64,000 nucleotides of DNA from Basidiobolus meristosporus CBS 931.73. Taxonomy: Eukaryota; Fungi; Basidiobolomycota. The DNA is taken from the NCBI GenBank assembly GCA_002104905.1, contig MCFE01000434.1, positions 11,714 through 75,713 of the forward strand, read 5' to 3'. The position numbers and the translations under genes are program-made. Within the stretch, counting starts at the first letter, position 1. Each line of letters starts with the position of its first letter. Of this stretch, positions 34,333-47,402 are shown in pieces. Under the pieces are notes generated by a model. The model saw nothing but the letters and a program-made list of their open reading frames with translations. It was not told the origin of the DNA and did not search any database.

Positions 34333-35857
34333 ATGACCACTAAATTCCACGGAAACGAGAACGTCGCATGCGAAGCTCACGAGCCTGATTTTCTTCAATG
34401 TGTTGAGGGCTTTTTCGATCAAGCTGCTGCAGTGTGCGGCGTGAAGAAATCCACCTTAAGTGCCATTCGCGGCATCGACGCTGTATTGTCAGTAACTTTC
34501 CCAATTGAGGTAGCTTTCACATCCATACGTATGATTACGATTACCAGCACCCATTAACAACGTTTATTAGCGCGAGAATGGTGAAACCGAAATTGTTCGC
34601 GGCTACCGTGCCCAACATTCCCGCCATAAGCTTCCAGTCAAGGGAGGCATTCGTTATGCCAAAGATGTTGATATGCATGAGGTCGAGGCCCTTGCCTCCC
34701 TCATGACCTACAAGTGTGCCGTTGTGGATGTTCCATTCGGTGGAGCCAAGGGCGGAGTGGCCATCAACCCACGTGAGTACACGGTCGGCGAGTTGGAGCG
34801 CATCACTCGTCGTTTCGCTTTGGAGCTGTGCCAGAAGAACTTCCTTGGCCCTGGTGTGGATGTCCCAGCGCCTGATGTGAACACTGGTGGACGCGAGATG
34901 ACCTGGATCATGGACACCTACCGCCAGCTCAACCCCACCGACATCAACGCCCCTGGCTGCATCACTGGCAAGCCAATCAACCAAGGCGGTGTTCGCGGCC
35001 GTACTGAGGCTACTGGCCTCGGAGTGTACTACAGCACTCGCGAGTTCCTGAAGTTCGAGCAGGTCCAGAAGGTCACTGGACTCACTGGGGACATTGAAGG
35101 CAAGACTGTGTCACTCCAGGGCTTCGGCAACGTGTCCTTCTATGCTGCCAAGTTCTTCATTGCCAACGGAGCCAAGGTTGTGGCTGTGTCCGACAGCAAG
35201 TTCTGCGCCTACAACAAGGACGGCCTGGATATCGAGAAGCTTGGAAAGTACAAGGCTGAGCATGGTTCGCTGAAGGGTTACCCTGATGCTGAGATCACCG
35301 AGGGATCCACCAAGGCCTTGGAGGTCGAGTGTGATATCCTTGTCCCATCTGCTCTTGAGCGTCAAATCGGCCTGAAGAATGTCCACAACATCAAGGCCAA
35401 GATCATCAACGAGGGAGCCAACGGGCCCATCACCCCTGCTGCCCACGAGATCCTTGTACAAAAGGGAGTCGTGATTGTTCCCGATCTTCTTGCCAATGCT
35501 GGAGGAGTGTGTGTGTCCTACTTCGAGTGGCTGAAGAATGTGTCCCACGTCCGCTTCGGTCGTATGAATAGAAAATGGGAAGAGCAAGGCAAGGAGCGTC
35601 TTCTCGCACTTGTTGAGGAGCAAGCTGGTCGCAAACTGTCCGAGTCAGAGCGCCAACAAGTGATCCACGGAGCTGAAGAGCACGAGCTTGTGTACTCTGG
35701 CTTGGAGGATACCATGATCAAGGCTTGTGAGGAGACCAGAATCACAGCTGAAGAATTCGGGGATATTGACTACCGCAAGGCAGCCATTGCCAATGCCATT
35801 CGCAAGATTGCTTCGTGCTTAGAGGGCACTGGTGTTATGTTTGCCAGCCGTGGTTAA
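34333..35857 (+). CDS. GDH: Glutamate dehydrogenase (GLUD/Dictyostelium-type with antenna), copy 1, 487 aa; 2 exons (34333-34509, 34571-35857)
   Basis: [55 protein letters not shown] 61-bp GT-AG intron restores the frame (TFPIE|RENGE). Confidence 0.95.
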
Positions 35858-36175
35858 CTTACCAAATCTATTCAACTAATTCTCATTAGACGTTTCAATC
35901 CACTTATTTGTACAAATTCATTGCAATAAACGTTTACTTCCTGATAGGATCAAACAAACACAAATTTTCGATTATCTGAGATTTCAGATGTGTAAACCAG
36001 TTTTTCCAATCATGAGGTCATGCTTTGCATCAGAAGGTTTCAGTAACTCTAGAGATCGATTATCAAACCATAGATTTTAGATAAACGAGCAAAAATAAGG
36101 TAAATGATACTAAAGACCAAATTTATTTAAATTAAATATACAACGGGATGATAGCTGAGTACTGATGCTTCCCGT

Positions 36176-45054: not shown

Positions 45055-45931
45055 ATTTCTCTGTACTATTATATCGGACATCATATTTTGTAATAAAGTT
45101 CATTTGTATTCAAAGTTCATCATTTGAAGGTTCACTGCATTTGGCTTTACCGAGAGTGGGCAAAATAATTCATTTGATTACCTTAAGCTGTAGTTCACGT
45201 ATTATTGCGTACGGCAATGCCAAGTAGGTGGTCCACCCAAAGAGCCGGCATGCCCGGAACCTTCCGACATAGGATAATGGATAAATTACGAGAATACTCG
45301 GAGAGGCGCGAGTACTATTTAGGTACGCAGATCGTATATTGGCTGAGGTAATTAATCGGGGTATCGGGTAACTCCGTGTCGGCTGGGAATTTATAAAGAA
45401 ATATGATGTGCAACCCTGTAGCCCTGGCCAACCCGTTAATTCTCACTGAAAAAAGAGATTTAGATTGCCACACTGATTCGGCCAAAATTTCCATTTTCAG
45501 CGAGGGGACGTGTATATGGGCAAACCCAGTGTTTGCATGATCTCATCATGGCATACCATTTGGGATGTTTTCTCTTGCTTAATTCCATGATTTGGCGATC
45601 GGTGGATTTTTGCCAAATGTTCAGTAGAACTCGCATGACCGTAAACCATCAATCATGTGCCTGGTGTAAAAAAATCCAGTTAGTCCCTTAAGCTGCTTCT
45701 GACGGCAGCAACAAATCAAATTTTGGATCAATAAAGATAAATTACATTAGTCTTTCTCCATACTGTTCCCGATAAAGAATCAAGATAATGATCATTTGTA
45801 CATTGCCGTAATTTCTTTCTTTTTCCACATGAAATGTGAGCCTTGGTATAATCCTGTTCTCGATATGCGATAAGAAATTGATATAAATATGCACGCCAGG
45901 GCATCCAAACGGTATAGCTCCTCAAGTAAAC

Positions 45932-47402
45932 ATGTCTACCATTAAGTACCAAGGAAACGAAAACGTCGCTTGCGAGGCTCACGAGCCCAACTTTTTACAA
46001 TGTGTTGAGGAGTTCTTCGATATCGCCGCTAAGGCCAGCGGAGTCAAGAAGTCGCTGCTGAACACCATCAGAGGTGTCGACGCTGTCTTGAGCGTCACCT
46101 TCCCCATCGAGCGTGAAAGTGGTGAGACGGAGGTGATTCGTGCCTACCGTGCTGAGCACTCTCGCCACAAGCTCCCAGTCAAGGGAGGTATTCGTTATGC
46201 CGACGATGTCGATATGCAAGAGGTCGAGGCCCTTGCCTCCCTCATGACCTACAAGTGTGCCGTTGTGGATGTTCCATTCGGTGGAGCCAAGGGCGGAGTG
46301 GCCATCAACCCACGTGAGTACACGGTCGGCGAGTTGGAGCGCATCACTCGTCGCTTCGCTTTGGAGCTCTGCCAGAAGAACTTCCTTGGCCCTGGTGTGG
46401 ATGTCCCAGCGCCTGATGTGAACACTGGTGGACGCGAGATGACCTGGATCATGGACACCTACCGTCCAGCTCAACCCCACCGACATCAACGCCCCTGGCT
46501 GCATCACTGGCAAGCCAATCAACCAAGGCGGTGTCCGCGGCCGTACTGAGGCTACTGGCCTCGGAGTGTACTACAGCACTCGCGAGTTCCTGAAGTTCGA
46601 GCAGGTCCAGAAGATCACTGGACTCACTGGGGACATTGAAGGCAAGACTGTGTCACTCCAAGGCTTCGGCAACGTGTCCTTCTATGCTGCCAAGTTCTTC
46701 ATTGCCAACGGAGCCAAGGTTGTGGCCTGTGTCCGACAGCAAGTTCTGCGCCTACAACAAGGACGGCTTGGATATCGAGAAGCTTGGAGAGTACAAGGCT
46801 GAGCATGGTTCGCTGAAGGGCTACCCTGATGCTGAGATCACCGAGGGATCCACCAAAGGCCTTGGAGGTCGAGTGTGATATCCTTGTCCCATCTGCTCTT
46901 GAGCGTCAAATCGGCCTCAAGAATGTCCACAACATCAAGGCCAAGGTCATCAACGAGGGAGCCAACGGGCCCATTCACCCCTGCTGCCCACGAGATCCTT
47001 GTACAAAAGGGAGTCGTGATTGTTCCCGATCTTCTTGCCAATGCTGGAGGAGTGTGTGTGTCATACTTCGAGTGGCTGAAGAATGTGTCCCACGTCCGCT
47101 TCGGTCGCATGAACAAGAAGTGGGAGGAGCAAGGCAAGGAGCGTCTTCTCGCACTTGTTGAGGAGCAAGCTGGTCGCAAACTGTCCGAGTCAGAGCGCCA
47201 ACAAGTGATCCACGGAGCTGAAGAGCACGAGCTTGTGTACTCTGGCTTGGAGGACACCATGATCAAGGCTTGTGAGGAGACCAGAATCACAGCTGAAGAG
47301 TTCGGCAACATCGACTACCGTACCGCCGCCATTGCCAATGCCATTCGCAAGATTGCTTCTTGCTTAGAAGGAACTGGTGTCATGTTCTCTAGCCGTGGAT
47401 AA
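45932..47402 (+). pseudogene. GDH: GDH copy 6 with four +1 insertions (pseudogene or sequencing errors)
   Basis: Spans 1471 bp against 1467 expected. Single extra bases near 46465 (ACCGTCCAG), 46726 (GGCCTG), 46857 (CCAAAGG) and 46974 (CCATTCAC). The rest is essentially identical to the intact copies. Confidence 0.85.

Follow-up and report, generated by a model that had tools for sequence, protein, structure and literature searches.

The glutamate dehydrogenase array

The stretch of DNA considered here, referred to as the window, comprises 64,000 nucleotides (nt) of contig MCFE01000434.1 from Basidiobolus meristosporus CBS 931.73 (assembly GCA_002104905.1, positions 11,714 to 75,713 of the forward strand) and contains six copies of a gene for glutamate dehydrogenase (GDH) between its positions 34333 and 47402. 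The copies, termed c1 to c6, form a tandem array with head-to-head and tail-to-tail arrangements, in the order c1(+), c2(-), c3(-), c4(+), c5(+) and c6(+). They encode an antenna-bearing enzyme of the GLUD1 class in a form without presequence and with a remodelled cofactor pocket. This form is confined to Basidiobolus and constitutes what is new, the antenna GDH class and the public annotation of the genes being known already. The individual copies are as follows:

34333-35857, plus strand: c1, exon 1 at 34333-34509 and exon 2 at 34571-35857, spliced product of 487 amino acids (aa)
36176-37642, minus strand: c2, intronless and intact, 488 aa
38350-39810, minus strand: c3, intronless and intact, 486 aa
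40951-42408, plus strand: c4, intronless and intact, 485 aa, the copy chosen for structure modelling
43597-45054, plus strand: c5, intronless and intact, 485 aa
45932-47402, plus strand: c6, four +1 single-base insertions as assembled, no single open frame

The only intron among the intact copies is that of c1 (34510-34570, 61 nt, GT..AG), and the spliced 487-aa product is identical to the public model ORX89597.1. Relative to every other copy, c6 carries inserted bases at 46465, 46726, 46855 and 46974, the second of which sits within the AV codons of the AVSDSK motif; its public model (P0002, 428 aa) bypasses the insertions by invented introns. A seventh copy of the same short form, P0129, lies unlinked on a different B. 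meristosporus contig. The six-fold amplification reported by the first-pass annotation, which had been made from the sequence alone, thus needs qualification: six copies are present, of which only five are demonstrably intact, and the unlinked P0129 has to be added. In short-read contigs of the same organism, depth amounts to about 105 in unique flanks versus about 280-1300 over the coding sequence, an excess of about fourfold or more; hence, the multi-copy state is not an illusion of the assembly. The antenna segment beginning with HVRFGRMN(K/R), the turn GFGNVS and the motif AVSDSK are encoded by all six copies.

In public records the B. meristosporus proteins go by the name 'glutamate dehydrogenase', except c6, which is entered as 'mitochondrial glutamate dehydrogenase'. 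Their relatives in B. ranarum bear the label 'NADP-dependent glutamate dehydrogenase', an automatic name that is likewise attached to Coemansia orthologues with the ancestral pocket. No paper about these genes was found in literature mentioning both Basidiobolus and glutamate dehydrogenase.

An antenna-bearing enzyme of the GLUD1 class

The array encodes a GLUD1-class GDH, that is, an antenna-bearing enzyme of about 50 kDa, as is evident from both ELFV domains, the core motifs, the antenna and the phylogenetic placement. The dimerisation domain PF02812 (ELFV_dehydrog_N, E 3.1e-50) is followed by the NAD(P)-binding domain PF00208 (ELFV_dehydrog, E 2e-59). The core motifs PVKGGIR and FGGAKGG are visible in all open reading frames (ORFs), and K81, G82, G83, G114, G115 and K117 are invariant in a 60-sequence alignment that includes c4; the Lys of FGGAKGG is presumably the catalytic one, as in GDHs generally. 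Among solved structures, bovine and human GLUD1/GLUD2 (E ~1e-141) and the GDH of C. elegans match best. An AlphaFold model of the c4 monomer (predicted local distance difference test score, pLDDT, 89.7) places the ascending antenna helix at residues 388-409, and the antenna, consisting of this helix and a descending strand, is inserted after the FEWLKN helix. Its assignment to the GLUD1 type, proposed at the outset, is borne out by an alignment with GLUD1 that continues through the antenna with one 10-residue gap, and by template modelling scores (TM-scores, normalised to query length) of 0.88-0.89 to bovine, human and worm GDH versus 0.74-0.80 to antenna-less GDHs. Moreover, the antenna has the same length as in the window protein in 124 of 125 aligned sequences.

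With the mammalian enzymes (PDB 8ar7, 5k12, 6g2u; 46-47% identity, TM-score 0.88) the window proteins share the fold, the domain order, the antenna after FEWLKN, a Ser at position P8 of the nucleotide-binding fingerprint and a Lys at the K295 position. They differ from them in lacking a presequence, in an antenna shorter by 10 residues and in three further fingerprint positions, having Ser instead of Gly at P6, Asp instead of Glu at P7 and Lys instead of Asp at P9. GLUD2 is itself a paralogue whose properties have changed, and it goes back to retroposition (PMC11050691). The NADP-specific Gdh1/Gdh3 enzymes of yeast and other Dikarya and GdhA of E. coli, on the contrary, belong to a separate subfamily, of which the array proteins are not members: chains from E. 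coli, Aspergillus and of the yeast type match at E 1e-29 to 1e-41 only, as opposed to 1e-141 for GLUD1. This subfamily has no antenna and features Ser or Ala at P2, where the window proteins have Phe. It is nevertheless the proposed functional analogue, given that it shares the absence of a presequence, Asp-Ser at P7-P8 and a residue other than Gly at P6 (PMC12364357).

An antenna GDH had been regarded by the first-pass annotation as exceptional in a fungus, a view that does not hold. A word search retrieved fungal orthologues with 60-67% identity from Mucoromycotina, Mortierellomycotina, Glomeromycotina, Kickxellomycotina, Entomophthoromycotina, Chytridiomycota and Blastocladiomycota, nearly all of which bear a presequence of 36-54 aa. 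A second tier at 55-59% identity comprises ichthyosporeans, a nucleariid, Corallochytrium and dictyostelids, and the likeness to dictyostelid GDH noted in the first-pass annotation is confirmed at 56-59% identity. No Dikarya sequence occurs among the best 120 matches of this search. A review published in 2026 on the GDHs of fungi denies these enzymes an antenna (PMC13179614), which is contradicted by the sequence record, since antenna-type orthologues occur in every early-diverging fungal phylum sampled. A passage of the same review, citing LeJohn (1971), states that more than 40 early-diverging fungi possess only NAD-linked GDH (PMC13179614). The comparison suggests that this NAD-linked GDH of 'lower fungi' is the GLUD1-class protein. 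The GLUD1 class is the ordinary GDH lineage of non-Dikarya fungi.

Origin of the presequence-less clade

A careful maximum-likelihood tree inferred from 60 proteins unites all Basidiobolus sequences in one group inside the fungi (support 100/99) with the topology (long b, ((long a, long c), short clade)), where the long forms are presequence-bearing paralogues and the short clade comprises P0129, the copies of the window and, from B. ranarum, the two genes P0125 and P0001. In agreement with the initial placement, the tree gives no grouping with bacterial or Dikarya GDHs. The short clade (support 100/100) is found in Basidiobolus only and goes back to the duplication, inside this genus, of a presequence-bearing gene that has been kept. 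Evolution along its stem was fast, with 0.37 substitutions per site versus 0.13 for the sister lineage. At least six presequence-bearing Basidiobolus paralogues are retained (among them P0003, P0004 and P0005). Their retention and the nested position of the short clade speak for a duplication and not for a relocation of the only copy; hence, the suggestion that an ancestral mitochondrial enzyme had been relocated has to be abandoned.

Short and long paralogues of B. meristosporus are 70-74% identical. Mitochondrial-type GDHs at large, i.e., those of early-diverging fungi, dictyostelids, unicellular holozoans and the long paralogues, share 55-74% identity and an identical antenna length with the window proteins, but differ from them by a leader of 36-54 aa rich in Arg, Ser, Thr, Ala and Leu, by the turn GFGNVG and by Glu at P7, with Arg, His or Tyr as the next residue and Asp or Asn after it. 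In total, 17 sites separate the short clade from positions that are otherwise at least 90% conserved, including 246, 247 and 265 in the pocket. Derivation of the gene, or of its SDSK segment, from bacteria or archaea was rejected, as the protein is nested in fungi and the residues flanking the motif are fungal in pattern.

A retrogene origin of the intronless copies was considered. No shared untranslated region or poly(A) trace is found among the copies, homology stopping at the start and stop codons, and the long paralogues likewise read as continuous ORFs, frameshifts aside.

Tandem repetition extends to the long forms, of which a series of at least five lies on MCFE01000132 (L002:10001-21538). 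The mature parts are near-constant within this array and the leaders vary, and each of the four copies examined contains one frameshift as assembled.

Absence of a presequence

In the short clade, only 14-17 residues precede the core motif EPNFL (EPDFL in c1), and they include one Lys, no Arg and two Glu. In 93 relatives, by comparison, a median of 43 aa with a median of five Arg plus Lys precedes the EP motif, and 71% of them have no acidic residue at all in the leader when the six core-adjacent residues are excluded. An N-terminal mitochondrial presequence of the kind seen in GLUD1-class GDHs is accordingly not found in the short clade. B. meristosporus and B. ranarum agree in this start. 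The C-termini (..SRG, ..NRG) are unlike a type 1 peroxisomal targeting signal (PTS1), which speaks against peroxisomal targeting.

The DNA upstream of the coding sequences is equally informative. An in-frame stop lies 2-36 codons 5' of each ATG, no ATG occurs in between, and the upstream DNA is unalignable from copy to copy. In addition, TATA[AT]A is present at -43 to -67 from the ATG in all nine short-clade genes examined (six in the window, P0129 and two in B. ranarum), against a background in the window of 0.8 per kb per strand. The boxes of the window copies are:

34271-34276, plus strand: TATAAA box of c1, 62 nt 5' of the ATG
37684-37691, minus strand: TATATATA box of c2, 47-49 nt 5' of the ATG
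39854-39859, minus strand: TATAAA box of c3, 49 nt 5' of the ATG
40891-40896, plus strand: TATAAA box of c4, 60 nt 5' of the ATG
43538-43543, plus strand: TATAAA box of c5, 59 nt 5' of the ATG
45882-45887, plus strand: TATAAA box of c6, 50 nt 5' of the ATG

Taken together, the boxes, the upstream stops and the unalignable flanks indicate that transcription probably starts just 5' of the ATGs, which would leave no room for a leader exon. The initial observation that a presequence is missing therefore stands, and no sign of an upstream exon supplying one was detected.

The public model of P0129 (L001:8001-9606) carries an extra 5' mini-exon (MNDSNREMP..), which lies upstream of the TATA box. Because the box is situated downstream of the mini-exon, the additional N-terminal residues of the model are doubtful, and the true start is likely the ATG of MSKYHGNEN.

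The remodelled cofactor pocket

GFGNVG is the sequence of the glycine-rich turn in about 118 relatives, in which the next strand ends with Gly, Ala, Ile, Val or Ser, followed by Glu, by Arg, His or Tyr, and by Asp or Asn. Every member of the short clade departs from this pattern at four positions:

P6: Gly in 117 of 117 relatives; Ser or Ala in the short clade
P7: Glu in 115 of 118 relatives; Asp in the short clade
P8: Arg, His or Tyr in 100 of 118 relatives; Ser in the short clade
P9: Asp, Asn or Glu in 114 of 118 relatives; Lys or Arg in the short clade

Asp at P7 is shared by the long paralogues a and c, so that the pocket changed stepwise. When PDB was searched with the pocket segment alone, the GDH of Pyrococcus furiosus (1gtm) ranked first with nine identical residues (KVVAVSDSK), and the GDH of Thermotoga second (KVVAVSDSR), ahead of GLUD1. 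Asp at P7 is found in NADP-specific GDHs, Ser at P8 is hydrogen-bonded to the 2'-phosphate in NADPH-dependent GDHs and is regarded as the key contact absent from NAD enzymes, and K264 of the NADPH-dependent GDH of Thermococcus profundus contributes charge (PMC12364357). The counterpart of K264 in c4 is K285, as derived from a gap-free alignment. Measured against the NADP fingerprint, Ser or Ala at P6, Asp at P7, Ser at P8, Lys or Arg at P9 and K285 fit, whereas Phe at P2 does not. Hence, the pocket can be read as one that probably accepts NADP(H), be it as the preferred cofactor or with dual specificity, without being strictly specific. The first-pass annotation had likewise noted the likeness of GFGNVS and SDSK to NADP-using enzymes, and the present comparison substantiates this point: the pocket is derived, it matches NADP-using archaeal GDHs to the point of identity of KVVAVSDSK in 1gtm, and the published rules for P7 and P8 agree (PMC12364357).

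The antenna-less hexameric GDHs of P. furiosus (1gtm), T. profundus (1euz/8xcp) and Thermotoga maritima (1b26) have, following the glycine-rich loop, a beta-strand and turn that equals KVVAVSDSK or deviates from it by one residue, and a Lys corresponding to K264 of T. profundus occurs in the window proteins too. These archaeal and bacterial enzymes differ, however, by the lack of an antenna and by an overall identity to the window protein of only 35-39%. Since the window proteins are phylogenetically fungal, the motif shared with them represents convergence and not common descent.

A comparable case is found in the mucoralean fungus Pilobolus umbonatus, whose GLUD1-class GDH P0072 is nested in Mucorales with 71-77% identity to the enzymes of Mucor, Benjaminiella, Rhizopus and others. 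Its N-terminus is short and contains Asp residues, and its pocket reads GVSASNGG with Ala at P7 and Ser at P8. A second P. umbonatus copy was not seen among the best 120 matches. P0072 may be an independent parallel to the change in Basidiobolus.

Allosteric sites

Nine residues of the bovine GTP site, in bovine numbering and with residue letters checked against the GLUD1 alignment, were compared with c4, and none of them is conserved: H209, S213, R217, R261, Y262, R265, K289, E292 and H450 correspond to R199, E203, L207, K251, F252, A255, E279, G282 and Y432, respectively. Among the fungal and protist relatives, five of the replacing residues (R199, E203, L207, F252 and Y432) show little or no variation, K251 and E279 are the most frequent residues at their positions, and the mitochondrial-type GDHs share the substitutions at most of the mammalian GTP-site positions with the window proteins. 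Consequently, the lack of mammalian GTP inhibition would characterise the fungal and protist clade as a whole, and inhibition of the mammalian type is not expected for the enzymes of the array. The Arg of the ADP site (bovine R459, pivot helix) corresponds to Lys441 in c4, a conservative change at a position where relatives have Val, Gln, Asn, Gly or Ser. Whether allostery survived had been left as an open question at the outset; its GTP part can now be answered largely in the negative, with site residues missing here and mostly throughout the clade.

Gene conversion, selection and the status of c6

Homology between the copies begins within a few bases of the ATG and stops at the stop codon; it is the coding sequences and not the flanks that are held 95-100% alike by gene conversion under purifying selection. 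Among c2-c5, pairwise synonymous divergence (dS) amounts to 0.06-0.10, the ratio of non-synonymous to synonymous divergence (dN/dS) between copies to 0.01-0.14, and copy-specific changes are distributed between synonymous and non-synonymous sites as 12:0 in c2, 8:0 in c5 and 6:1 in c3. The array thus illustrates clearly how concerted evolution can be restricted to coding sequence.

The history of this process can be followed in c1, which is a mosaic: the 5' end has diverged and the centre has undergone conversion. Over the first 270 nt, identity amounts to 73-75% with c2-c5 and to 78% with P0125 of B. ranarum; over the 270 nt that follow, identity with c2-c6 reaches 98-99%. P0125 is located downstream of Prp18, like c1, and has an intron at the same codon, and c1 is its positional orthologue. 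The anchor of this synteny in the window is:

32524-33576, plus strand: Prp18 splicing-factor gene, next to which a c1-type GDH gene is found in B. ranarum also

In the central segment, all array copies of B. meristosporus are 88% identical to P0125 versus 82% to the intronless P0001 of B. ranarum; in the 5' segment, c2-c6 are 80-82% identical to P0001 versus 73% to P0125. Together with the shared intron and the shared Prp18 neighbourhood, these identities imply that both gene types predate the species split and were later mixed by gene conversion. The unlinked P0129 shows only 76-80% nucleotide identity and has escaped conversion.

The substitutions that c6 has to itself (eight synonymous, one non-synonymous) are the signature of a constrained gene, which argues against an old pseudogene. 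Its four inserted bases occur in no contig of the runs X1, X2 and X3, but the contigs also lack the single-nucleotide polymorphism alleles of c6 (46535, 46614, 46768 and 46821) and have thus collapsed onto the majority copies, so that the missing insertions do not settle the matter. The single frameshift per copy in the long-form array hints at indel errors in repeats of this assembly. Hence, c6 is either a very recent pseudogene or an assembly error.

Run X3 (27 Mb of contigs with adapter-tagged ends) resembles a transcriptome and is recorded as 'DNA?'; it was not counted as expression evidence. Over window positions 45978-47285, its depth reaches 1,100-15,500 across GDH coding sequence shared among the copies and is zero on the c6-specific ends and flanks. 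If X3 were RNA, the short-form GDHs would be very highly expressed and c6 would be silent.

Proposed function and alternative explanations

On balance, we consider it fairly probable that the product of these Basidiobolus-specific GLUD1-class paralogues, which have lost the presequence, acquired a remodelled pocket and multiplied, is cytosolic and accepts NADP(H). As set out above, a mitochondrial-type GDH gene was duplicated within Basidiobolus with the original being kept, one duplicate lost the 5' end coding for the presequence, so that translation starts 14-17 residues before the mature core, and four adjacent pocket residues, nearly constant in over 110 relatives, were replaced before the gene was multiplied into a tandem array. 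The product would stay in the cytosol, form the usual antenna-linked hexamer and accept NADP(H), either preferentially or alongside NAD(H), as is to be expected from Asp at P7, Ser at P8, Lys or Arg at P9 and the Lys equivalent to K264. It could then convert 2-oxoglutarate and ammonium into glutamate, or the reverse, in the cytosol and at high dosage, the mitochondrion being served by the long paralogues; five to seven active gene copies may supply the dosage, and both the benefit of this dosage and the direction of the flux are part of the supposition. The short form would accordingly be classed, from its sequence features, as probably a neofunctionalised paralogue, i.e., a new cytosolic version of a known enzyme. 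A bolder version, which we put forward only tentatively, is that it constitutes the first antenna GDH to be both cytosolic and NADP(H)-preferring, produced by natural remodelling of four pocket residues in a paralogue whose mitochondrial sisters look NAD-type, and maybe the main assimilatory NADP-GDH, replacing or standing beside a Gdh1-type enzyme, with seven copies for dosage.

The determinants of the choice between NAD and NADP in GDHs are a long-running and exception-ridden problem (PMC12364357), and the role of the antenna outside animals is barely explored. In this respect, matched paralogues with 70-74% identity in one genome, one type having the presequence and the ancestral pocket and the other a remodelled pocket without presequence, constitute a natural experiment for a cofactor switch and a compartment change of an antenna GDH.

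Several observations weigh against an NADP(H)-accepting cytosolic enzyme of high dosage. P2 of the fingerprint remains Phe, as in NAD-type and dual GDHs, a residue that is typical of NAD-dependent GDHs and hinders the 2'-phosphate, and the fingerprint rules for GDHs have many exceptions (PMC12364357). Moreover, the Thermotoga GDH with the near-identical KVVAVSDSR has dual specificity, so that for the window proteins a dual enzyme is to be expected just as readily as a preference for NADP. It is conceivable, then, if somewhat unlikely, that the enzyme is cytosolic yet NAD(H)-linked or merely dual, that the pocket tunes affinity or regulation, and that the array supports not the assimilation of ammonium but the catabolism of glutamate and other amino acids with release of ammonia, as would suit a habitat rich in protein such as dung or gut. 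In line with this, mammalian GLUD1 with Glu-Ser at P7-P8 is already dual (PMC12364357), and the amplification of the mitochondrial-type paralogues, too, points to a general pressure for GDH flux more than to a specific role of NADPH. What such an enzyme would leave unexplained is that four adjacent near-invariant residues shifted together, all of them toward the state of NADPH-dependent archaeal GDHs, and that this change coincides with the loss of the presequence.

Two further explanations concern the compartment and the array as such. That the proteins still reach the mitochondrion, be it by an upstream exon missing from the annotation, another start site or a signal within the protein, and hence are extra mitochondrial isozymes, is highly improbable. 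No run on record as RNA was found in searches of public sequencing runs, and some gene models of the assembly are unreliable (P0002, P0129), but the TATA box 43-67 nt 5' of the ATG in nine of nine genes, the in-frame stops without an upstream ATG, the N-terminus with two Glu and no Arg, and the conservation of the start in both Basidiobolus species all point the other way; besides, with non-homologous upstream flanks each copy would need its own leader exon. It is very unlikely, too, that the array arose neutrally, as a side effect of a genome prone to duplication, and consists of redundant, decaying copies without significance for dosage or function. Such a view could appeal to c6, which is frameshifted four times as assembled and also counts against a fully active array, to the frameshift in each of the four long-form copies examined and to another array of five to six copies, encoding PHO4 transporters, 7 kb away. 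It is opposed by the low dN/dS between the copies, by a scarcity of non-synonymous copy-specific changes that extends even to c6, and by the age of the clade, which together with both gene types (c1-like with intron, and intronless) is older than the split of B. ranarum and B. meristosporus. We therefore retain the presequence-less, NADP(H)-accepting paralogue as the favoured explanation.

Neighbouring features

The second tandem array mentioned above belongs to the PHO4/PiT phosphate-transporter family, so that two nutrient-assimilation families are amplified side by side. It comprises five intact intronless ORFs of 506 aa, which start at 13955, 18716, 21008, 23286 and 25535, and a partial copy at 16731-17747. 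This array and the other features noted in the window are:

4916-7087, plus strand: protein kinase gene
13955-27055, plus strand: PHO4/PiT phosphate-transporter array
30179-31627, minus strand: ankyrin-repeat protein gene
47906-48268, minus strand: Skp1-POZ-like ORF, just downstream of c6
60444-63314, plus strand: pol region of a Ty3/Gypsy-type long terminal repeat retroelement, with aspartyl protease, RVT_1, RNase H and integrase zinc domain

A KilA-N/ankyrin gene also adjoins the GDH loci L001 and L003.

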